DNA of 63,628 nt, filler included, from Octopus bimaculoides (Eukaryota): NCBI RefSeq assembly GCF_001194135.2. It is 6 parts of 5 records of this genome, joined end to end, with 100 filler letters (N's around TTAATTAATTAA, not from the genome) between each part and the next. Parts side by side here need not be neighbours in the genome. Positions count along the whole stretch, not along the records: positions 43,954 to 61,277 come from NC_069010.1; 5 more parts are not named here. One strand, given 5' to 3'. The notes beneath the pieces are model-generated. The model had not been told where the DNA came from, did not search any database, and was given only the letters and a program-made list of their open reading frames with translations. Positions within the stretch are counted from its first letter, which is position 1; every line of letters begins with the position of its first letter. Position numbers and translations under genes: made by a program. Shown piece by piece: positions 42,544 to 61,222 of the stretch.

Positions 42544-44189
42544 CGACAGGCTTCTTTCAGTTTCCGTCTACCAAATCCACGAGGCTTTGGTTGGCCCGAG
42601 GCTATAGTAGAAGACACTTGCCCAAGGTGCCACGCAGTGGAACTGAACCCAGAACCATGCGGTTGGTGAGCAAGCTTCTTACCAGAAAGCCACTCCTGCG
42701 CCTTATATATANNNNNNNNNNNNNNNNNNNNNNNNNNNNNNNNNNNNNNNNNNNNNNNNNNNNNNNNNNNNNNNNNNNNNNNNNNNNNNNNNNNNNNNNN
42801 NNNNNNNNNNNNNNNNNNNNNNNNNNNNNNNNNNNNNNNNNNNNNNNNNNNNNNNNNNNNNNNNNNNNNNNNNNNNNNNNNNNNNNNNNNNNNNNNNNNN
42901 NNNNNNNNNNNNNNNNNNNNNTATATATATATATGTATATGTATATGTATATATGATATATACATGTGTATGCATATATGTATGCACAGAATGAGAGATA
43001 CGTGCATGCATGCATACGTGCGTTCATACGTATATAAAGAGAGATAGACAGGCGGATAGAAAGACAGACGAACAGAAACAGAGAGAACACAACTCTGGTG
43101 GGATTTGACATCAGAAAGCCAGCGTTGCGCTGCTGTTTGCTACCAAAATAATGATATGGGAAAGAAACAGCAAACGACTTCGGTTATTCGGATGTGTGTT
43201 AGAAAGATAAGAAAACTGTCATGTATTGAAAAAAGGAAGAAATCTCTAAATCACACAAGAAAGAAAAGAAATGAATAAAACTAAAAAGGGCTATAAAAAC
43301 GCACACAGAGAGAAAAAAAGCCCAGAAAAGCAGAACGATATTCTATGGGGTAATTAGAACGTGACATGTCCCGTCCCTAAACAATACGCCTTTTCCAACT
43401 GTTCCGCTAAATCTTTCATCTTTCACAGATGAAAAAAATCATGGGAACATAAATTAACACCTTGACTCCACCCTGATCGAATACTTTGCCAGCCCCCTTC
43501 AGCATAAAGAAAATAGAAAAAAAGGGCCAGCAGTTTCTTCTTAATAAAGACGCTGTTTGTTGTGTGTATGTCTATGTGTTAAGGGTGGGTGGTACCGTGT
43601 GGGTTTTTTATCTCGGATGTCATACGAACACAGATGGTGCTAATACTTTTACGGAATTAAGACAGTAAAGTGTGACATCAGTTCCGCCTCTGTTTTTCTT
43701 TTTCTTTACCAAAAATAGGGGTTTGTTTATTTATTTATTTATTTATGCCATCAGATTGCAGCACCTTTGTCACCTCTTGAAGGTATTCAGTTTCTCTTAC
43801 CCAGTTGCTCTCTGTCAGCAGTCTGATAACATTTTCTCCTATCACCACTACCANNNNNNNNNNNNNNNNNNNNNNNNNNNNNNNNNNNNNNNNNNNNTTA
43901 ATTAATTAANNNNNNNNNNNNNNNNNNNNNNNNNNNNNNNNNNNNNNNNNNNNTATATATATATATATATAAGACAGTCTTCCATACAGTTCTACCAGAT
44001 TCACTCCCAAGTCAGATCAGGGCTTTAGCAGAAAAAACTTGCTCAACGTGCCATACAGTGGGACTGAACCTAAAATCACATGGTTGTAAAGCAAGGCTAT
44101 TAACCACACAGCCATGCCCATGATGCAACAGACATGTATATCTACAGACGTTCCAGTCATGCCCATCCCTTGTATTAAGTATTACTTAC

Positions 44190-44345
44190 ATGTATTCCCA
44201 TCACAGGGTTTCATCGGGCAGGTGTAGCAGCAGGCTTGGGCAACAGACGTCTGGTAGCACTCCCACTGGTGGCTCTTAGACACCTGTTCACAGGTGAGGT
44301 TCGTACCCGAGATTCGATTCTTCTGGTCTCGCAATGGACATTCGT
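44190..44345 (-). CDS. ADAMTS/MIG-17-like gene, exon 8 of those found (Cys-rich module)
   Basis: 156 nt, phase 1->1, CACAG acceptor, T|GTAAGT donor; (D)ECPLRDQKNRISGTNLTCEQVSKSHQWECYQTSVAQACCYTCPMKPCDGNT. Confidence 0.85.
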
Positions 44346-44476
44346 CTGTGGCAGAATCGGCGCATGGGTGGGAACAGAAAATTGAAATAGAGAAAGAGAC
44401 ATGTGTAAAATTTTATTCATAACAAGAGGAATTCATGACGTAGTAGTAGTATTAGTGTTATTATTATTATTATTAT

Positions 44477-44528
<52 letters not shown>

Positions 44529-44873
44529 GGTAGTAGTGGTGGTGGTGGTGGTAGCAGCAGTGCTGGAGTTAGTAGCAGTGGTGATGGTAGTACAGTAGTG
44601 GCTGTAGTAGAGGTAGTTGGGGTGGTAGGAGTCGAGTGGTAGTGGTGACGGTTGTGGTAGTAGTAATAGTGGTGGTGGTGATTATGGTGGTAGTATTAGT
44701 AGTAGTTGTGGTGGTGGTGTTGGCAGTTGTGGTGGTAGTAGTAATAGGGTGGTGATGGTAGTAAAAGTAGTCGTGGCAGTGGTAGTAGTGGTGGCTGTGG
44801 TAGTAGCAGCAGCAGCAGTAGCAGTAGCTTTAGTAGTAGTAGTAGTAGTAGTAGAAATAGTAGCAGTAGCAAC

Positions 44874-44904
<31 letters not shown>

Positions 44905-45065
44905 TTTTTAGGACAAGAACAGAACACAAAGCATCATAACTAAAAATATCGCAAGGAATTTTATCTGTTGTTTTACTGATTCCACCATCCACCACCTGTT
45001 TTTTTTTTTTGTTTTTTTTTGTGTTCCATTGTTTTTTTTAATCAAGGAAGCTTTCTTTTACCAAC

Positions 45066-45117
45066 CTGCAACCTCTGGGGCTTCTCTATCTGTAACACAT
45101 TTCCCATTCATGCACCA
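45066..45117 (-). CDS. ADAMTS/MIG-17-like gene, exon 7
   Basis: 52 nt, phase 0->1, TTTTTTCCTATCCAG acceptor, G|GTTGGT donor; WCMNGKCVTDREAPEVA. Confidence 0.9.
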
Positions 45118-50375: not shown

Positions 50376-50831
50376 CAAATACATCTATGCATGTGTGCGT
50401 ATATGCATATATATTTGTGTGTGTGTGTGTGCTGGTATGGTGTAATTTAGTGATTGTTTGTGATGTTGCAGCTGTGTTGCAGTGGTGGTGGTGGTGGTGG
50501 TGGTGGTGGTGGTGGTGTGTGATGGTAATCTAGTATGGTAGTGCTAGAAGTAGTTGTAGTGGCAGTGGTAGTGGTGGTGGCGATGGTTGTTGTGGTTGTA
50601 ATAGTACCAGTAGTGGCGGTGGCGGCGGTAGTGGTGAGGGTGGTGATGGTAGTACTACAAGTGGTCATAGTGGTAGTGGTGGTGGTGGTGGTGGTGGTGA
50701 GAGTGGGGTTTGTGGGAGTACTGGTTGTAATAGTTCCAATAGTTATGGTGGTGGTGGTGGTGATGGTAGTACTACAAGTATTAGTAGTGGTGGTGGTGGT
50801 GGTAGTAGTGGTGGTGATAATAGTAGTACTG

Positions 50832-50880
<49 letters not shown>

Positions 50881-50954
50881 CAGCAGCAGTAGTTGTGNNN
50901 NNNNNNNNNNNGGTGGTGGTGGTGGTAGTAGTGGTGGTGATAATAGTAGTACTG

Positions 50955-51003
<49 letters not shown>

Positions 51004-51525
51004 CAGCAGCAGTAGTTGTGTTGGTGGTGGTGGTGGTGATGGTTGTAGTAACGGTAGCAGTAGTGGCAGCAGCAACAGCGGTAGTCATAGCAGTCACGCA
51101 ATGTAGCAACTGATGGTGGTGCCAGTGGTTGACGCCAGCGGTTGCGGTGATGGTTATGGTGGTAGTGGTGTCAATGTATTTATGTGATGTTCAGCTGCTT
51201 AAACCCACCTTAAAACACTCCCCCACATCGAAAAACCATTCTTGCTAACAATGTCTTCTGTTCTGGCTTATAATTTTTGTGTCTTTTCTTTTGATTCCAT
51301 TTTTTTTTTGTTTTTTTTATTTCATTTCAGTTCTTTTTAGAGTTTTTCTCGTTTAATCCTCCTGTTCAGACATGCGTGTATGCGTATTCACGCATGTTCA
51401 TCTGCATTGTTACACGCACGGTATATTTGTGTGCATACACATATATATATATATATATATATGTGCATATATGTGCATATATATGTTTATATGTGTGTAT
51501 ATATATGTATATATCTGTATGAACA

Positions 51526-51902: not shown

Positions 51903-53682
51903 TGCGTATGTATGTGTGTGTGTATGTATACATGTATGTATATATGTATGCATACATGTAGATAATTCATTACTATCTTCTGTTCTGTTGTTCTTCACCA
52001 TTTCTTTACTGGCAGTCATCACCTACTCAACCACCTCTTCAATCTTGTTCCTCATTCACAACATTCCCCACCACCACTACACCATCACCTCTAGCCATCC
52101 CTCATTCTCTCCACACACTCTTATAACATTTTAACCACTCCCTCTCCCCTCTCTTTCTTGTATTCACCTTCGATGCTCCAGCCTGGCATGTCTCCACAAA
52201 CATGTTTATCTTTCAGCTCCACCCCCAGATCCTCCTACTGGCTTTTTACTAAATGTGAGGTGCACCTTGTAATTCCTCTGCAGTGGGGAGACATTCAAGG
52301 GTTGGTGACAGGAAGAGAACCCAGCTGGGGGGAAATAGAAAATTTGCCTCAAAGGATAACGTTTGACTCAAGTGAGCCGGGGAAATGTGAATCATTTGCC
52401 TATCATCTTTTAATTGCTTCAGTCTTTTGACTGTGGCCATGCTGGGGTACTGCCTGAAGAGCTTAATGAAATAAACCAAGACCAGTTGTCATGTGATGAT
52501 GGATGTACAAACACAAACACATGCACACACATACACACACAAATATATATATATATATATATATGTATGTATATATGTATGTATGTATATGGTGTTCTTT
52601 ACTGATGAAGGAAATATCCTTTTCGGATATCCATTTGACGGATATTTGTCCTCATTTTCTTTGTTGTTAACACAATGTTTTGGCTGATACATACATACAC
52701 ATATATATATATATATATATATACGATGGGCTTCTTTCCGTTTCGGTCTACCAAATCCATTCACAAGGCTTTGGTCGGCCCAAGACTATAGTAGAAGACA
52801 CTTGCCCAAGGTGCCATGCAGTGGGACTGAACCCGGAACCATGTAGTTGGTAAGCAAGCTACTTACCATACAGCCACACCTGCGCTATATATATNNNNNN
52901 NNNNNNNNNNNNNNNNNNNNNNNNNNNNNNNNNNNNNNNNNNNNNNNNNNNNNNNNNNNNNNNNNNNNNNNNNNNNNNNNNNNNNNNNNNNNNNNNNNNN
53001 NNNNNNNNNNNNNNNNNNNNNNNNNNNNNNNNNNNNNNNNNNNNNNNNNNNNNNNNNNNNNNNNNNNNNNNNNNNNNNNNNNNNNNNNNNNNNNNNNNNN
53101 NNNNNNNNNNNNNNNNNNNNNNNNNNNNNNNNNNNNNNNNNNNNNNNNNNNNNNNNNNNNNNNNNNNNNNNNNNNNNNNNNNNNNNNNNNNNNNNNNNNN
53201 NNNNNNNNNNNNNNNNNNNNNNNNNNNNNNNNNNNNNNNNNNNNNNNNNNNNNNNNNNNNNNNNNNNNNNNNNNNNNNNNNNNNNNNNNNNNNNNNNNNN
53301 NNNNNNNNNNNNNNNNNNNNNNNNNNNNNNNNNNNNNNNNNNNNNNNNNNNNNNNNNNNNNNNNNNNNNNNNNNNNNNNNNNNNNNNNNNNNNNNNNNNN
53401 NNNNNNNNNNNNNNNNNNNNNNNNNNNNNNNNNNNNNNNNNNNNNNNNNNNNNNNNNNNNNNNNNNNNNNNNNNNNNNNNNNNNNNNNNNNNNNNNNNNN
53501 NNNNNNNNNNNNNNNNNNNNNNNNNNNNNNNNNNNNNNNNNNNNNNNNNNNNNNNNNNNNNNNNNNNNNNNNNNNNNNNNNNNNNNNNNNNNNNNNNNNN
53601 NNNNNNNNNNNNNNNNNNNNNNNNNNNNNNNNNNNNNNNNNNNNNNNNNNNNNNNNNNNNNNNNNNNNNNNNNNNNNNNNNN

Positions 53683-53865: not shown

Positions 53866-53979
53866 CTTTTGTCTTCCACATGATGTGCCATCAGCTGGGA
53901 TAATCTTTTGGCAGTGTCCAGAGTTGGTAGAGCACCAAAGGCCAGTACAAAGACCACGATAAGATGACCAATACTTTGA
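53866..53979 (-). CDS. ADAMTS/MIG-17-like gene, exon 6 (disintegrin-like/Cys-rich)
   Basis: 114 nt, phase 0->0, AACTTCAG acceptor, AAG|GTCAGT donor; SKYWSSYRGLCTGLWCSTNSGHCQKIIPADGTSCGRQK. Confidence 0.92.
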
Positions 53980-55637: not shown

Positions 55638-55767
55638 TCGACATACATACGACGTCTCTCCAAAGATGTGTTGACACTGGACATCAGCGTCAAACATTTG
55701 ACCAAGCTGACGGTGTGGCTTTGAACGACGGACGGACGGTGTGTTCTTCAGACAGTTTGAGTTCTCT
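55638..55767 (-). CDS. ADAMTS/MIG-17-like gene, exon 5
   Basis: 130 nt, phase 2->0, TTGCAG acceptor, CGA|GTAAGT donor; (E)ENSNCLKNTPSVRRSKPHRQLGQMFDADVQCQHIFGETSYVCR. Confidence 0.92.
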
Positions 55768-57108
55768 CTGCAATAGTAGTAGTAGAAGTAGTATTAGTAG
55801 TAGTGATGGTGGTGGTGGAGGTAGTAGAGGTGGTGAAGTTGGTGATGGTGGTGGTGGTGGCGGAGAAGGTGGTGGTGGTGGTGGCTGGGGTGGTGATTGT
55901 AATAGTATTAATGAAGGTAATGGTTGTGGTGCTTTTGGTGGTGGTGGTGGTTGTGGTGGTAATTGTAATGGTATTAGTGAAGGTGACGGTTGTGGTGCTT
56001 TTGATGGTGATGGTGGGGTGTTGGTTGTGGTGCTAGTGATGGTTGTGGCGGTGGCTGAGGTGATGGTGGTTGTGGTGTTGGTGGTGGTGGTGGTGATGGT
56101 TTAAGTGGTGGCATGAATGGGGTGGTGGAGGAAAAAAGAGGTCAGAGAAGCAAGTGGAGGAAGAAGAGGAAAGAGGAAAAGAAAACCCAAATGATTGAAC
56201 ATGAAAATCATCATCATCATCATCATCATCCTACCAATCACTGCCATGTATGTTTGTGAGTGTACAGAGAATTAGATAGATAGACAGACAGATAGATTCA
56301 TTGATAGATAGATGATATAGGTTATACACACACACACACACAAACACACATATATTTCGTTTTTGTATTTGGTTTGCAAGATTCTTTATGTGAATTTGTG
56401 TGTTGAATCGTATTTTATTGTGTCTGGGGAGAGTCATTCTCTTTTAGTGTCTACAGAGTATACTGGGTGCTTTTTACATGTATCATCATCATCATCATAA
56501 TCGTTTAACGTCCACCTTCCATGCTGGCATGATTTGGATGGTTTGACAGGAGCCAGCCAGGCAGAAGACTAAACCAGGCTACTGTGTCTGTTTCAGCATG
56601 GTTTTTGTAAAGCTGGATGCCCTTCCCTACACTGACCACCCCACAGAGTGGACTGAGTGCTTGTCAAGAGGGACAAGCACAGGCGAGGTCACTTTTGCCA
56701 TGGTCTTTTACAGTTGGATGCCCTTCCAAATGCCAAGCACTTCACTGTGTGGACTGGATGCATTTTATGTGGCACCAGCACCGGCAGGGTCACCAAGTAA
56801 CCTGCAAGACAAGGAATTTTGAGAAGGGAGGGGGGCATTGGGGGAGGTGATTTTGTATATATATCTATGTGTGTGTCTGTGTGTTGTGTCCCCCACCACT
56901 GCTTGCCAACCATTGTTGTCATGTTTACATCCCCCATAACATAGTGGTTCAGCAAAAGAGACTGATAGAATAAGTACCAGATTAAAATACAAACAGAAGT
57001 AGTGGTGTCAATTCATTCGACTAAAATTGTTGAAGGCAGTGCCCCAGCCTGGCCACGGTCTAATGGCCGGAACAGCTAAAAGGTAGATAACAGAAACATA
57101 GTACTTAC

Positions 57109-57273
57109 TCGTTAAGGCGTTTCAGATTTTGACCGACAGAGTTACTGGAGCAGGAGGAGAAGTTCCACATATTGAGTATAGATCCTTCTGTGAGGGTCAC
57201 ACTTTTTGGCGACATGATGTAGTGGTCTTCTGGCCGACAAGGGTTCGAGTCTCCATCGTGGCGGGCTCCAAGA
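57109..57273 (-). CDS. ADAMTS/MIG-17-like gene, exon 4 (third His, Met-turn)
   Basis: 165 nt, phase 2->2, TTAATGTAG acceptor, GA|GTAAGT donor; (S)LGARHDGDSNPCRPEDHYIMSPKSVTLTEGSILNMWNFSSCSSNSVGQNLKRLN. Confidence 0.93.
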
Positions 57274-58377
57274 CTACATTAAAACATGGCGAAAAAGCAA
57301 AAAATTGCTTTAGGTAATTTTGAAGAACAATCGAAAGGGGTGAAAGATGGCTAAGTCATCCTTGGTGTAATTTGAAATCAGAATAGATAGATATTCGAAT
57401 CGTATTTCTTTTCTTTCTACATTTCACTTCATGCCCCATGTTTGTGTGTGTGTGTGTGTGTGCGTGTGTGTGTGTGTGCATAGAGGGTGCTGAAAAGTTC
57501 CTGGCTTTGCCCTGACATTGTATGAGAGTCATAAATGAGTGTCACTGTCGTACAAGTAGGGTCATTCATTTCCAATCTTCTGCAAAAACATGTCTGGCCA
57601 CATGCAAATATTGGAAACAGAAGTTAGGTGACAGGAAGCGTACCCGGACATAGAAAACCTATCTCAAGAAAACACTGTCCAACTCATACAAGCATGGAAA
57701 AGTGGATGACACATAACATACACACTTTTACTTGTTTCAGTGATTAGACTGTGGCCATGCTGGGGCACCACCTCAAAGAATATTTTTAGTTAAAAGAATC
57801 AATCCCAGTACTTGTCTTTTTTTTTTCACTTTTTAAGCCTTGTATTCATTCTATCGGCCCCTTTTTGCTGAGCCACTAAGTTACATGGACATAAACAGAC
57901 TAACACCTCTTGTCAAGCAGTGACAAGGGGCAAACAGGCACAAAGACACATACATATACATAAGTGCAGGAGTGGCTGTGTGGTGAGGAGCTTGCTTCCC
58001 AGCCACATGGTTCTGGGTTCAGTCCCACTGCATGGCACCTTGGGTGAGTGTCTTTTACTATAGCCACAGGCCACCCAACTTTTGTGAATGGATCTGGTAG
58101 ACGGAAACTGAAAGAAGCCTATCATATATATATATATATATATATATATCTGTGTGGGTGTGTGTGTGTATCTGTGTCTGTGTTTGTCACCCTGCCATTG
58201 CTTGACAATGGATATTGGTGTGGTTATGTCCCTGTAACTTAGCAGTTCAGCAAAAGAGACCGATAGAATAAGAACTAGGCTTACAAAGAATAAGTCCTGG
58301 GGTCGATTTCTTGATGGTGCTCCAGCATGGCTGCAGTCAAATGACTGAAACATGTAAAACAATAAAACGATATACAT

Positions 58378-58424
<47 letters not shown>

Positions 58425-59184
58425 NNNNNNNNNNNNNNNNNNNNNNNNNNNNNNNNNNNNNNNNNNNNNNNNNNNNNNNNNNNNNNNNNNNNNNNNNNNN
58501 NNNNNNNNNNNNNNNNNNNNNNNNNNNNNNNNNNNNNNNNNNNNNNNNNNNNNNNNNNNNNNNNNNNNNNNNNNNNNNNNNNNNNNNNNNNNNNNNNNNN
58601 NNNNNNNNNNNNNNNNNNNNNNNNNNNNNNNNNNNNNNNNNNNNNNNNNNNNNNNNNNNNNNNNNNNNNNNNNNNNNNNNNNNNNNNNNNNNNNNNNNNN
58701 NNNNNNNNNNNNNNNNNNNNNNNNNNNNNNNNNNNNNNNNNNNNNNNNNNNNNNNNNNNNNNNNNNNNNNNNNNNNNNNNNNNATATATATATGGCAGGC
58801 TTCTTTCAGTTTCCGGCTACCAAATACACTTACAAGGTTTTGGTCAGCCCAGAACTGCAGGAGAAGACACTTGCACGAGGTGCCACATAGTGGGACAGAA
58901 TCATGTGGTTGGGAAACAAACTTCTTACCACACAGCCACACTATCCAACTTGGGGAAATATTATCTTGCTTGGAAACAAGTAAATGTATGTGACAGGAAA
59001 AGCATCAGGCCACAAAAAATCTGCTTCAACAAATTTTGGTGATCTATGCAAGCAGTGAAAACTGGATATTAAAATGATGATGATAACTGAAAGTGAAACT
59101 GAAATGTATGTTACTGAAGACAGTTTCTTGAAGATAAAGACGTCATTGAGAATCAAGTAAAATGATAGTAAACATAGGCATTAC

Positions 59185-59290
59185 CTGTGTGCTAACACAT
59201 GTGTTGCTACAGTGATTGTGCTGAAGTCCAACCGTTCCTGGATGATTGATACACTTTCATTGGAGCAAATCTTTGACTGTGGAGAGTATC
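59185..59290 (-). CDS. ADAMTS/MIG-17-like gene, exon 3 (zinc motif HVLAH)
   Basis: 106 nt, phase 1->2, TTTTACTAG acceptor, AG|GTAATG donor; (G)YSPQSKICSNESVSIIQERLDFSTITVATHVLAH; boundaries fall where ADAMTS genes usually have them. Confidence 0.92.
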
Positions 59291-59723: not shown

Positions 59724-59761
59724 CTCTCAGTTTTTTCTGTCCATTTTCAAACACTTCAAGG
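59724..59761 (-). CDS. ADAMTS/MIG-17-like gene, exon 2
   Basis: 38 nt, phase 2->1, TTTTGTTATTGATAG acceptor, G|GTAAGT donor; (I)LEVFENGQKKLR(G); bridges the phases of its neighbours. Confidence 0.8.
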
Positions 59762-59884: not shown

Positions 59885-60291
59885 TACTCTCTTTACTCTT
59901 TTACTTGTTTCAGTCATTTGACTGTGGCCATGCTGGAGCACTGCCTTTAGTCGAGCAAATCGACCCCAGGACTTATTCTTTGGATTCCTAGTACTTATTC
60001 TATCGGTCTCTTTTGCCGAACCGCTAAGTTACGGGTACGTAAACGCACCAGTATCGGTTGTCAAGCGATGTTGGGGGGGGGGGGACAAATACAGACACAC
60101 ATATATATATATTTATATACATATATACGATGGGCTTCTTTCAGTTTCCGTCTGCCAAATCCACTCATAAGGCTTTGGTCGGCCCGAGGCTATAGTAGAA
60201 GACACTTGCCCAAGGTTCCACGCAGTGGGACTGAACCCTGAACCATGTGGTTGGTAGGCAAGCTACTTACCACACAGCCACTCCTGTGCCT
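59885..60291 (-). mobile_element. SINE family B, full-length gap-free copy
   Basis: All parts present; further copies near 12.7/13.5, 15.0, 42.3, 52.4, 54.9, 57.7, 58.0, 58.8, 60.8 and 63.4 kb. Confidence 0.9.
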
Positions 60292-61082
60292 AAGTTGGGA
60301 ACCTTTTTTCCTAAGGGCATTCATGTTTTATCATAAGATCTTTCATTATTACCAGAATTATCCTGCATTGAGATATGAATATAACAAGGCTATATAATTT
60401 TGTGCTGGTTTATTATTCTATCTCTTGCTGTTTTTATGACTGTGCATTGCATTTCTTAACGGGTTTTACCTAGCAACCAATGAAATCTCAATGTACTGTT
60501 TACCGATCATATTTTGATGTATTTATTGTTATTTCATTCTAAACTATATTACATTAAATCACATGGATTAATTATATAATAATTAATTATCATAATATCA
60601 AAGATTATTAAATAATGCATGGTAACATTGATCAAGATCTGCAATAATATTATTGCCTTAAATATCAAATCATTGAATATTACAAGTGTTTTATAAATAT
60701 ATTGCTATTGATATTATAACATATATATATATAAATATTAAAAGTATTTAAATACTCCATACAACAATAAATATGATGTGAATCTTTCAGGAATAGCCAT
60801 TAAAAATCTTCATCATCATCATCATCATCATCAACATCATTATAGGCACAGGCATGGCTGTGTAGTAAGAAGTTTGCTTCCCAACCACATGGTTCTGGGT
60901 TCAGCCCCACCGTGTGGTACCTTGGGCAACTATAGTTTTGTGCTGACCATTTGAAAGTAGCAAGACTGGTAACAATAAGCAGAGTATAATATCATAAACA
61001 ACAAAAACAATATTAACAGCAATAACATAATAACATTAACAACGACATAAGATATGAAGCAGAAGCAAGGAGTCAGTCGTAC

Positions 61083-61222
61083 ATGGTGAAGAACATAGCA
61101 TGGTCATGTTCTGGAAGATTCCTTCGTTTTGACCAGTGTGTTAGGGCTTTTAGGAACTGATCAGTTTTAATCTCAGGTTTTTGACGTCCATCTTTGTCCA
61201 GCCATAGTCTTGACTTGGGGTC
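61083..61222 (-). CDS. ADAMTS/MIG-17-like gene, exon 1 of those found (metalloprotease domain)
   Basis: 140 nt, phase 0->2, TTCTGTTGCAG acceptor, AT|GTACGA donor; DPKSRLWLDKDGRQKPEIKTDQFLKALTHWSKRRNLPEHDHAMFFT. Upstream exons not found in the window. Confidence 0.88.

Follow-up and report, generated by a model that had tools for sequence, protein, structure and literature searches.

The octopod gene described here is likely, at a probability of roughly 0.7, to encode a conserved, non-catalytic ADAMTS-like pseudo-protease that retains its zinc site and has been kept for binding. The window, which is the whole stretch of 63,628 nucleotides of Octopus bimaculoides DNA that was analyzed (filler included), carries eight internal exons of this gene on the minus strand of one piece; the gene is real and conserved among octopods, and both of its ends are outside the piece. 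The general-base glutamate of the HExxH zinc motif is replaced by valine, while the rest of the motif is intact. Judging from these residues, the protein is probably zinc binding and probably catalytically dead.

Eight exons and the splice within the zinc motif

The window sequence is identical to chromosome CM046630.1 of GCA_001194135.2. An earlier, sequence-only reading of this DNA had proposed an eight-exon, 901-nt frame with canonical splice sites, and our model reproduces it exactly. Each of the eight exons is bounded by an AG acceptor and a GT donor, the frame is unbroken, and the translation is 100% identical to residues 38-338 of XP_014777755.1 (P0168), an annotated O. bimaculoides protein with a full length of 530 aa that is automatically named "ADAMTS18" in RefSeq. 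Single-sequence searches based on shared five-residue words matched only the Argonauta protein, and a family-alignment query recovered the O. bimaculoides annotation. In the protein collections searched, the octopod protein is represented only by genome-derived models, with no transcript-derived copies. The exons and the intron that divides the zinc motif are as follows.

61083-61222, minus strand: exon a, 140 nt, middle of the reprolysin-type catalytic domain (DPKSRLWLDKDG...HDHAMFFT); AG acceptor, GTACGA donor, phase 0 to 2
59724-59761, minus strand: exon b, 38-nt mini-exon, (I)LEVFENGQKKLR(G); tblastn with the Argonauta protein, AG/GTAAGT sites
59185-59290, minus strand: exon c, 106 nt, ...SIIQERLDFSTITVATHVLAH, first half of the zinc motif; orthologous exons in Argonauta and O. 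sinensis
57274-59184, minus strand: intron c-d, with an assembly gap, (AT)n and (TG)n microsatellites and SINE-like repeats; splice borders
57109-57273, minus strand: exon d, 165 nt, SLGARHDGDSNPCRPEDHYIMSP...NLKRLNE, with the Gly, third His, Asp and Met-turn; splice sites, spliced model
55638-55767, minus strand: exon e, 130 nt, start of the ADAMTS disintegrin-like module (NSNCLKN...QLGQMFDADVQCQHIFGETSYVCR); Pfam ADAMTS_CR_2, residues 172-239
53866-53979, minus strand: exon f, 114 nt, SKYWSSYRGLCTGLWCSTNSGHCQKIIPADGTSCGRQK; aligns to ADAMTS-1 ...CSTLWC...ADGTSCGEGK
45066-45117, minus strand: exon g, 52 nt, WCMNGKCVTDREAPEVA, end of the disintegrin-like module; splice sites, ADAMTS structure alignment
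44190-44345, minus strand: exon h, 156 nt, phase 1 to 1, first six-cysteine PLAC-like repeat (ECPLRDQKN...CCYTCPMKPCDGNT); splice sites

Exon a agrees with P0168 and has an Argonauta counterpart of equal length and 71% identity (L001 14845-14984); more 5' exons lie past the edge of the piece. Exon b is 100% identical in O. sinensis. The orthologues of exon c are at L001 17513-17618 in Argonauta (HQLAH) and L004 20476-20581 in O. sinensis (HVLAH), and exon d is 67% identical to Argonauta L001 19235-19399. At the other end of the piece, the donor of exon h (T/GTAAGT; T/GTGAGT in Argonauta) leads to three further six-cysteine repeats past the edge, and P0168 continues after exon h with ...DGNTCCKFDD..., encoded by exons from L003 41800 onwards. 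We rejected the TAA at 44184-44182 as a genuine stop, since use of the GTAAGT donor at 44189 is evident both from the phase 1-1 structure of the exon and from the annotated protein.

Splicing of exon 59290-59185 (106 nt) to exon 57273-57109 (165 nt) on the minus strand gives ...YSPQSKICSNESVSIIQERLDFSTITVATHVLAH followed directly by SLGARHDGDSNPCRPEDHYIMSPKS..., in which THVLAH from exon c is joined to SLGARHDG...YIMSP from exon d. The junction yields the canonical HxxxHxxGxxH spacing found in every member of the family alignment. Exons c and d are likewise joined directly in the annotated Argonauta protein. The assembly gap, an N run at 58425-58783, is entirely within the intron (59184-57274), with an (AT)18 array at 58388-58424 on one side and TA repeats on the other. 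A hidden exon in this gap was considered and rejected, based on the orthologous O. sinensis intron. That intron is 2294 nt long on a gapless contig (L004), has the same AG/GT borders, and aligns at its two ends with both ends of the O. bimaculoides intron; it contains no coding exon, only trinucleotide-repeat ORFs.

The general-base position in octopods and their relatives

The zinc motif of the O. bimaculoides protein is HVLAHSLGARHD. The spliced translation bears out the original claim that all three zinc-ligand His residues persist, together with Gly, Asp and Met-turn, and that Val takes the place of Glu. Residue numbers below refer to the 302-residue spliced model, in which V91 corresponds to V128 of XP_014777755.1. 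The Val codon had been placed at ~59197-59199; it is indeed GTG, at a position one base away (59198-59196).

59199-59201, minus strand: His90 codon, CAT (spliced model)
59196-59198, minus strand: Val91 codon, GTG, at the general-base Glu position of HExxH (spliced model)
59187-59189, minus strand: His94 codon, CAC (spliced model)
57267-57269, minus strand: Gly97 codon (spliced model)
57258-57260, minus strand: His100 codon (spliced model)
57255-57257, minus strand: Asp101 codon (spliced model)
57213-57215, minus strand: Met115 codon, the Met-turn (spliced model)

A GTG codon produced by sequencing or assembly error, or a rare allele in a species that truly has GAG, would be another explanation of the substitution. 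Only one O. bimaculoides assembly entered the comparison, and the window is identical to it. Against this, no Glu is present at the position in any of three independently sequenced octopod genomes (0/3; O. bimaculoides, O. sinensis and Argonauta). O. sinensis, in an independent assembly and on a gapless contig, has HVLAH with a GTA rather than a GTG codon for Val, and its His codon also differs synonymously; Argonauta hians has HQLAH, with the Gln codon CAG. A Val encoded by a different codon in one species and a Gln in another effectively refute an error or a rare allele. Rescue at the RNA level is rejected as well: as had been argued for GUG, base logic shows that A-to-I editing cannot convert GUG, GUA or CAG to a Glu codon (GAR).

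In contrast with the octopods, all 20 non-octopod relatives in the family alignment have Glu at this position. In a representative search with the Argonauta protein as the query, HExxH is kept in 146 of 150 cluster representatives of the molluscan TSR-less (thrombospondin-repeat-less) family. The exceptions are the octopod clade, P0142 (an intronless gene with HQLAH), and P0076 and P0136, whose sites are wholly degenerate. The site has been lost at least three further times in the molluscan family, besides the octopods. Of 39 alignment columns that are ≥95% identical in the 20 active-looking relatives, octopods keep 35, and only three of the exceptions are non-conservative, the catalytic Glu among them. 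H90, H94, H100, D101 and M115 are all kept, the last of these being the Met of YIMSP, a column that is ≥90% conserved in the family alignment. Octopods also share the changes E77Q and P130M at positions that are otherwise invariant.

The protein could still be a working peptidase, in which zinc alone or a nearby residue activates water and Val or Gln merely lowers or alters activity. An enzyme would also show the strict conservation of zinc ligands, Gly, Asp and Met-turn seen here, and the dN/dS of the catalytic domain is as low as that of the rest of the protein. We nevertheless regard this as unlikely. The side chain of Val is not ionizable, sister lineages carry different residues (Val and Gln), so that no specific replacement chemistry is conserved, and 146 of 150 relatives have Glu. 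E-to-Q at this position is the standard inactivating change: the E303Q form of Caenorhabditis elegans MIG-17 "lacks catalytic activity" and does not rescue (PMC4856095), in line with the earlier statement that this Glu is essential.

Selection, gene ends and domain organization

Comparison of 231 codons between O. bimaculoides and O. sinensis gives 23 synonymous and 2 non-synonymous codon differences. For Octopus against Argonauta, the overall dN/dS is ~0.11, an approximate value because dS is saturated (1.8), and the catalytic part gives 0.09; the uncorrected pN/pS is 0.27. Every exon length and splice phase is conserved between the two genera, and octopods keep all the cysteines that are invariant in the family alignment, including 13 of the disintegrin-like module and first repeat. 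By these codon comparisons, the protease-like domain is under strong purifying selection.

These data bear directly on the possibility of a pseudogene, whether young or in decay, or of a misassembled copy, with the open frame a leftover. Searches of 7-10 kb upstream did not recover the 5' part of the gene, the collections searched hold no transcript-derived protein, and the introns are rich in gaps and repeats, all of which would fit such a history. However, the frame, lengths, phases and AG/GT sites of the eight exons are kept in both Octopus and Argonauta, as is every family-invariant cysteine, the 23:2 ratio and the dN/dS of 0.11 indicate constraint, and an additional conserved exon is present upstream of the annotated starts in both genera. 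An intact gene under strong purifying selection is not a decaying pseudogene, and we consider this explanation very improbable.

The 5' end of the gene is poorly served by annotation. Three gene models from three species begin at three unrelated places. The 7-10 kb upstream in O. bimaculoides, O. sinensis and Argonauta were searched with 150 relatives as tblastn queries, by comparing the upstream flanks of O. bimaculoides and Argonauta one ORF at a time, and by scanning for motifs; this revealed neither the N-terminal catalytic part (~40 or more residues, judged from relatives), nor a prodomain with a cysteine switch, nor a signal peptide. The sole yield of this search was the additional exon just mentioned (RWFNKG...), upstream of the annotated ATG codons in Octopus and Argonauta. 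At the 3' end, a search of the Argonauta flank revealed no extra exons within 4.4 kb, and the next Octopus exon is ~10 kb downstream. We assume that the octopod protein is secreted and has a complete fold.

The claim that the protein is ADAMTS-like stands. In the 302-aa model, Pfam Reprolysin (PF01421) matches residues 17-160 with 46.8 bits (cut-off, 20.8), and ADAMTS_CR_2 (PF17771), which is also found in full-length P0168, matches residues 172-239 with 65.2 bits (cut-off, 27.3). Structures of ADAMTS proteases, ADAMs and snake-venom metalloproteinases are matched at E values of 4.6e-16 to 9e-3, the match to ADAMTS-1 being at 4.6e-16, while molluscan relatives match across the whole 302 residues at E values of ~1e-67. 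However, Pfam detects no TSP_1 or spacer match in either the 302-aa model or the 530-aa P0168, which makes the RefSeq name "ADAMTS18" only nominal. The disintegrin-like module (exon g) passes directly into the first six-cysteine repeat (exon h), and the order along the protein is reprolysin-type metalloprotease, ADAMTS disintegrin-like module, four six-cysteine repeats, and a Thr-rich tail or stalk. Based on this predicted organization, the protein is not an ADAMTS in the strict sense but a TSR-less one, resembling the MIG-17 type.

The C-terminal cysteine repeats, scanned alone at E values up to 10, match no Pfam family, PLAC included; their C...C...C...CCxxC spacing is similar to that of PLAC, which is a resemblance only. 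The O. sinensis orthologue is automatically named "mig-17-like" by NCBI, as is a relative from Mya arenaria. Both this name and "ADAMTS18" imply an active protease, and together with three models that have three artificial 5' ends they make the current annotation misleading. An AlphaFold2 prediction with two sequences was uninformative (mean pLDDT, 32; pTM, 0.18), and a scan for bacterial promoters and terminators, which is irrelevant to an animal gene, gave nothing above chance. Literature searches by accession, and for ADAMTS proteins or salivary-gland metalloproteases of octopuses, yielded nothing on this gene.

Known relatives and a proposed binding role

The true nearest relatives are the molluscan TSR-less ADAMTS-like proteins, which have the same module order and 32-40% identity across 302 residues. 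Examples are Liolophura XP_064597481, named "mucin-2-like," and oyster, mussel and scallop proteins named "uncharacterized" or "ADAMTS-like." Among solved structures, the best relatives of the protease and disintegrin-like region are vertebrate ADAMTS-1, -4, -5 and -13 (E values of 4.6e-16 to 1e-11, residues 11-241), which have in common with the octopod protein the frame of the zinc motif, the Met-turn and, in the disintegrin-like module, the Cys pattern. They differ in having an active Glu as well as a central TSP1 repeat with Cys-rich and spacer domains. Of the four cysteines in the ADAMTS "CGxxxCDTLG...C...SC" stretch, the octopod catalytic domain lacks three. One ADAMTS13 structure chain, 6qig_A, has HQIGH at the aligned position. 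We take this chain to be the engineered inactive E225Q form of ADAMTS13, in which case the fold tolerates the change.

A different kind of non-catalytic relative is represented by the ADAMTSL proteins and papilin, which are related to the ADAMTS proteases and have lost the protease domain wholly. Like the protein proposed here, they are non-catalytic ADAMTS relatives, and they are matrix binding or regulatory proteins. The two differ in composition: ADAMTSL proteins have TSP1, Cys-rich and spacer modules and no protease-like domain, whereas the octopod protein has a protease-like domain and no TSP1.

MIG-17 is an ADAMTS family member without TSP1 repeats, consisting of a signal, a prodomain, a metalloprotease domain, a disintegrin-like domain and a PLAC-type cysteine module (PMC4856095). 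It resembles the octopod protein in combining a metalloprotease and a disintegrin-like module with C-terminal cysteine modules and no TSP1, a likeness judged from domain organization. It differs in that its HExxH is present and needed, whereas the octopod protein has Val or Gln in place of the Glu and also carries four cysteine repeats and a Thr-rich tail.

The closest parallel is with mammalian ADAM7 (HQLGHNLGMQHD) and ADAM29 (HHLGHNLGMNHD), both recognized as pseudo-peptidases whose His ligands and Met-turn are intact (PMC11266112). They belong to the same M12B subfamily and, like the octopod protein, have replaced only the general-base Glu and kept the three His, the Gly, the Asp and the Met-turn (Table 2 in PMC11266112). 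The HQLAH of Argonauta is exactly the E-to-Q change of ADAM7, and the ADAM7 and ADAM29 genes are likewise conserved and functional despite loss of the Glu. They differ in being members of the ADAM branch and, besides disintegrin, Cys-rich and EGF modules, they have a transmembrane segment and a cytoplasmic tail, whereas the octopod protein has an ADAMTS-type disintegrin-like module and six-cysteine repeats, and its nearest relatives are molluscan ADAMTS-like proteins. The octopod loss of Glu is independent; the genes are not orthologous, and the same kind of change has occurred in another clade.

If the octopod protein is a pseudo-protease of this kind, there would be no proton-accepting side chain beside the zinc-bound water and no useful hydrolysis of peptide bonds, although the domain would probably still fold and bind zinc. 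The gene may then have been kept for a non-catalytic binding role, in parallel with ADAM7 and ADAM29. What its active ancestors bound in the matrix or at the cell surface, or an inhibitor of theirs, may still be held by the domain but left uncleaved, so that it acts as a trap, competitor or adaptor.

A bolder version of this proposal is tentative, and we would sooner doubt it than rely on it. It holds that this may be the first natural ADAMTS-side M12B pseudo-enzyme with a full protease-like domain and an intact zinc site, fixed across incirrate octopods (Octopus and Argonauta) and possibly the only cephalopod representative of the molluscan family. Only a ligand-holding function would have been kept, as a substrate trap or inhibitor sink at the cell surface or in the matrix, and E77Q and P130M would be part of a remodelled cleft.

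Such a protein would establish no new principle, since ADAM7 and ADAM29 already show the pattern. Pseudo-proteases are increasingly seen as regulators, and the non-catalytic relatives known so far on the ADAMTS side are those that have lost the protease domain. If our reading is correct, the octopod gene would provide a natural "substrate-trap" domain of ADAMTS type and a tool for finding the ligands of the TSR-less molluscan ADAMTS-like proteins.

Gene model and the junction across the assembly gap

The sequence-only reading had described a reprolysin zinc motif, assembled by splicing within an eight-exon, 901-nt frame, in which the general-base glutamate is replaced by valine. Joining 59290-59185 to 57273-57109 (minus strand) does yield DFSTITVATHVLAH followed across the junction by SLGARHDGDSNPCRPEDHYIMSP, and both exons have an AG acceptor and a GT donor. 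The codon GTG (Val) at 59198-59196 occupies the position of the metzincin general-base Glu, while the three zinc-ligand His, the Gly and Asp of the motif and the Met of the Met-turn are kept. We rebuilt the gene independently by comparing minus-strand open segments with an Argonauta hians protein, the sole close homologue first found. This gave the same total of 901 nt in a single continuous frame, with canonical splice sites throughout.

Exons of the gene model
61222-61083, minus strand, exon a, 140 nt
59761-59724, minus strand, exon b, 38 nt
59290-59185, minus strand, exon c, 106 nt
57273-57109, minus strand, exon d, 165 nt
55767-55638, minus strand, exon e, 130 nt
53979-53866, minus strand, exon f, 114 nt
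45117-45066, minus strand, exon g, 52 nt
44345-44190, minus strand, exon h, 156 nt

A profile search identified the annotated product as XP_014777755.1 (530 aa; [quoted passage not shown]). The window exons correspond to its residues 38 to 338 with 100% identity, which confirms the eight-exon model. A TAA lies in frame two codons past the exon h donor (window 44182-44190). As a stop codon (44184-44182) it is ruled out by XP_014777755.1, in which the exon h donor at 44189 (T/GTAAGT) is used and, beyond the piece, three further six-cysteine repeats and a Thr-rich tail follow. Were this intron retained, the product would be truncated after the first cysteine repeat (...CDGNTCK, stop), and Argonauta has a like arrangement after its exon h equivalent (...TTCEY, stop). 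The last annotated exon, outside the piece (50391-50540 of the O. bimaculoides locus, L003), encodes the low-complexity, Thr- and Met-rich C terminus ASLYWLTAQLMLTAITTSTTTTTTTASTTSMMTMMMMMMTALTITMSRPL, which is conserved in O. sinensis with small repeat-length changes. This end may be an anchor signal of the membrane or GPI type, or it may be an annotation artefact.

A run of N's (58425-58783), flanked by (AT)n arrays, interrupts the c-d intron (59184-57274). The window piece is base-for-base GCA_001194135.2 chromosome CM046630.1 (L003 14704-32027), in which two further gaps bound it, so that assembly is not an independent check of the gap. In Octopus sinensis, a 34-kb contig without gaps (L004) carries the six exons a to f with equal lengths and the same AG/GT borders. 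The intron between its exons c and d, at 2294 nt, aligns at both ends to that of the window and holds no coding exon, only trinucleotide-repeat open reading frames. The annotated Argonauta protein joins the equivalents of exons c and d directly, and with this junction the motif has the canonical HxxxHxxGxxH spacing that all aligned relatives show. Based on the O. sinensis contig, the Argonauta protein and this spacing, we conclude that the splice across the gap is sound and the frame unaffected.

All protein models are genome-derived, and the public ones (XP_014777755.1, A0A0L8GUX5 and XP_029654688.2) have three unrelated start places. The RefSeq model takes an internal Met as its start. Unrelated sequence opens both the 2015 model and that of O. 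sinensis, in which the start falls within a SINE-like repeat (MGLNPEPCGW). Each of the three is incomplete at its 5' end. In both Octopus and Argonauta, the frame continues 5' of every annotated ATG codon through a further conserved coding exon with a good acceptor (L003 9941-10033, RWFNKGRTKNGNRKQETITEMQEFYAAMVDR; Argonauta locus L001 8432-8530, RWFNQDLKQRSDHKQHTFTKMEEYYRAIV). A search of 7 to 10 kb upstream did not reveal exons encoding the N-terminal part of the catalytic domain, the prodomain or the signal peptide. A structure prediction from two sequences was uninformative (pLDDT 32).

Intronic repeats in the window
44017-44166, 52724-52884, 57900-58118, 58833-58941, 60064-60324 and 60790-60991, both strands, short interspersed repeat
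44450-44930, 50450-51110 and 55800-56110, long trinucleotide-repeat arrays

The short interspersed repeat translates as ...GLNPEPCGWEA... or ...LLSVSVYQIHSQ..., and it also occurs in the Argonauta locus (86 to 97% identity to L001 23768-23862 and 26683-26776). Spurious open reading frames of 100 to 220 codons, encoding poly-Thr, poly-Val, poly-Leu or poly-His, arise from the trinucleotide arrays, one of which (50450-51110) can be aligned with similar arrays of the Argonauta locus (~71%). Just 3' of Argonauta exon f (L001 21787-22390), a unit comprising the last ~52 nt of the exon, its GT donor plus an (ATC)n tract occurs in at least three tandem copies (period 120 to 126 nt, 89 to 92% matches). 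This array, which is absent from the window, yields several copies of QCHRIVPL(D/G)GTSCGSQK followed by gtcagt that are possible alternative donors.

Domain architecture and molluscan relatives

The ADAMTS-like assignment of the sequence-only reading is borne out by profile matches. Two Pfam models match the 302-residue translation of exons a to h: Reprolysin with 46.8 bits (cut-off 20.8) and, for the ADAMTS disintegrin-like module, ADAMTS_CR_2 with 65.2 bits (cut-off 27.3). The top solved relatives across the protease and disintegrin-like regions are ADAMTS-1, -13, -5 and -4 (E of 4.6e-16 to 1e-11). The 530 residues of XP_014777755.1 contain neither a thrombospondin type 1 repeat nor a spacer nor any further domain ancillary to ADAMTS, and the RefSeq name "ADAMTS 18" is therefore only nominal. 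The automatic name of the O. sinensis orthologue, "metalloprotease mig-17-like", is a better fit to the architecture. Caenorhabditis elegans MIG-17 consists of a signal, prodomain, metalloprotease, disintegrin-like and PLAC domain without TSP1 repeats (PMC4856095), and the octopod protein likewise combines metalloprotease and disintegrin-like regions without such repeats. Its cysteine repeats have PLAC-like spacing, yet no Pfam model matched them.

With the Argonauta protein as query, an exhaustive HMMER search returned 507 cluster representatives (E ≤ 0.001). The nearest named representatives are exclusively from bivalves, chitons and gastropods and are annotated "uncharacterized", "ADAMTS-like", "MIG17-like" or "mucin-2-like". 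These molluscan relatives align over the full length of the 302-residue model with 32 to 40% identity and are built alike: the protease leads into a disintegrin-like module, then six-cysteine repeats and a Thr/Ser-rich stalk, after which a membrane segment is often present. Among the best 150 of the 507 representatives, the HExxH Glu is present in 146. Two have HQxxH, namely, the Argonauta protein and P0142, the 731-aa product of an intronless gene on an ENA metagenome contig (L002 3001-5196; HQLAHSLGAYHDG). The remaining two, P0076 (QQVSRSLGANDD) and P0136 (QQVARSLGSRDD), have a wholly degenerate site in which all zinc ligands are gone. The active site has been lost independently in P0142, P0076 and P0136, and pseudo-protease formation thus seems to be recurrent in this family.

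Replacement of the catalytic glutamate under constraint

One possible explanation for the Val codon is a sequencing or assembly error or a rare allele. The orthologues argue against this, since neither has Glu. In O. sinensis, THVLAH is encoded with CAC GTA TTA GCA CAC where O. bimaculoides has CAT GTG TTA GCA CAC, so a second species, known from an independent assembly, has kept Val despite a synonymous codon change. Argonauta reads THQLAH, with the codon CAG; the pattern of selection described below also speaks against error. GTG and CAG are each one step from GAG and two steps from each other, which indicates that the Glu site has changed at least twice. This site now tolerates chemically unlike residues, while the nearby His residues are invariant.

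A pseudogene is likewise not supported. The two Octopus species, compared over 231 codons, show 23 synonymous but only 2 non-synonymous codon differences. Octopus and Argonauta share 68% amino-acid identity. Their Nei-Gojobori dN/dS is 0.11 over the compared sequence as a whole, 0.09 in the catalytic part and 0.13 elsewhere, although dS is saturated (1.8); without correction, pN/pS is 0.27. Exon length is the same in seven of the 8 exons, and all splice phases are conserved. We also defined 39 reference columns, each at least 95% identical among 20 active-looking relatives, and the octopods retain 35. The exceptions are the catalytic Glu (E91V/Q), a conservative I114V in Argonauta alone, and the shared E77Q and P130M. 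Gln77 (window 59240-59238) lies in the S(I/V)VE(D) strand preceding the zinc helix, and Met130 (57170-57168) lies in NPWxFSSCS. Both are non-conservative changes at positions invariant in 19 to 20 of the 20 relatives, and both are older than the Octopus-Argonauta split. These comparisons bear the mark of a functional gene in which constraint still acts on the protease-like domain.

Predicted mode of action and comparison with known pseudo-peptidases

In metzincins, the HExxH Glu is the general base that polarizes the zinc-bound water, and its replacement is the standard route to an inactive enzyme. Val offers no proton acceptor. The solved ADAMTS13 chain 6qig_A, which we take to be the engineered E225Q form, has HQIGH at the aligned position, suggesting that the fold and zinc site survive Glu replacement. 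MIG-17 E303Q lacks catalytic activity and does not rescue most mutant phenotypes (PMC4856095). As the sequence-only reading stated for GUG, A-to-I editing yields no Glu codon from GUG, GUA or CAG. The octopod protease-like domain probably folds and binds zinc without cleavage. It may be kept as a binding module whose partner is a one-time substrate, a ligand in the matrix or on the cell surface, or an inhibitor that acts on its active relatives. The disintegrin-like module, cysteine repeats and Thr-rich stalk would serve to display it on cells or within the matrix. Conserved loss of Glu under constraint upholds the core of the sequence-only reading: the gene encodes a real, conserved ADAMTS-like protein that is very probably catalytically dead. 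The decoy, scaffold and venom-gland roles proposed in that reading are possible uses of such a protein.

ADAM7 (HQLGHNLGMQHD) and ADAM29 (HHLGHNLGMNHD) are mammalian pseudo-peptidases in which Glu alone is replaced and the His ligands and Met-turn are intact (PMC11266112). The octopod protein has a like lesion, but those two are ADAMs, whereas it is of the ADAMTS/MIG-17 type. The non-catalytic ADAMTS relatives known to us, the ADAMTSL proteins and papilin, lack the protease domain altogether, in contrast to the octopod protein, which retains a protease-like domain. Our literature search returned no account of the octopod gene or of such an ADAMTS-type pseudo-protease; the gene is already annotated, and its inactive site is unreported in the literature searched. 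While it introduces no new principle, the octopod gene offers a clean natural experiment, and the analysis usefully corrects its annotation.
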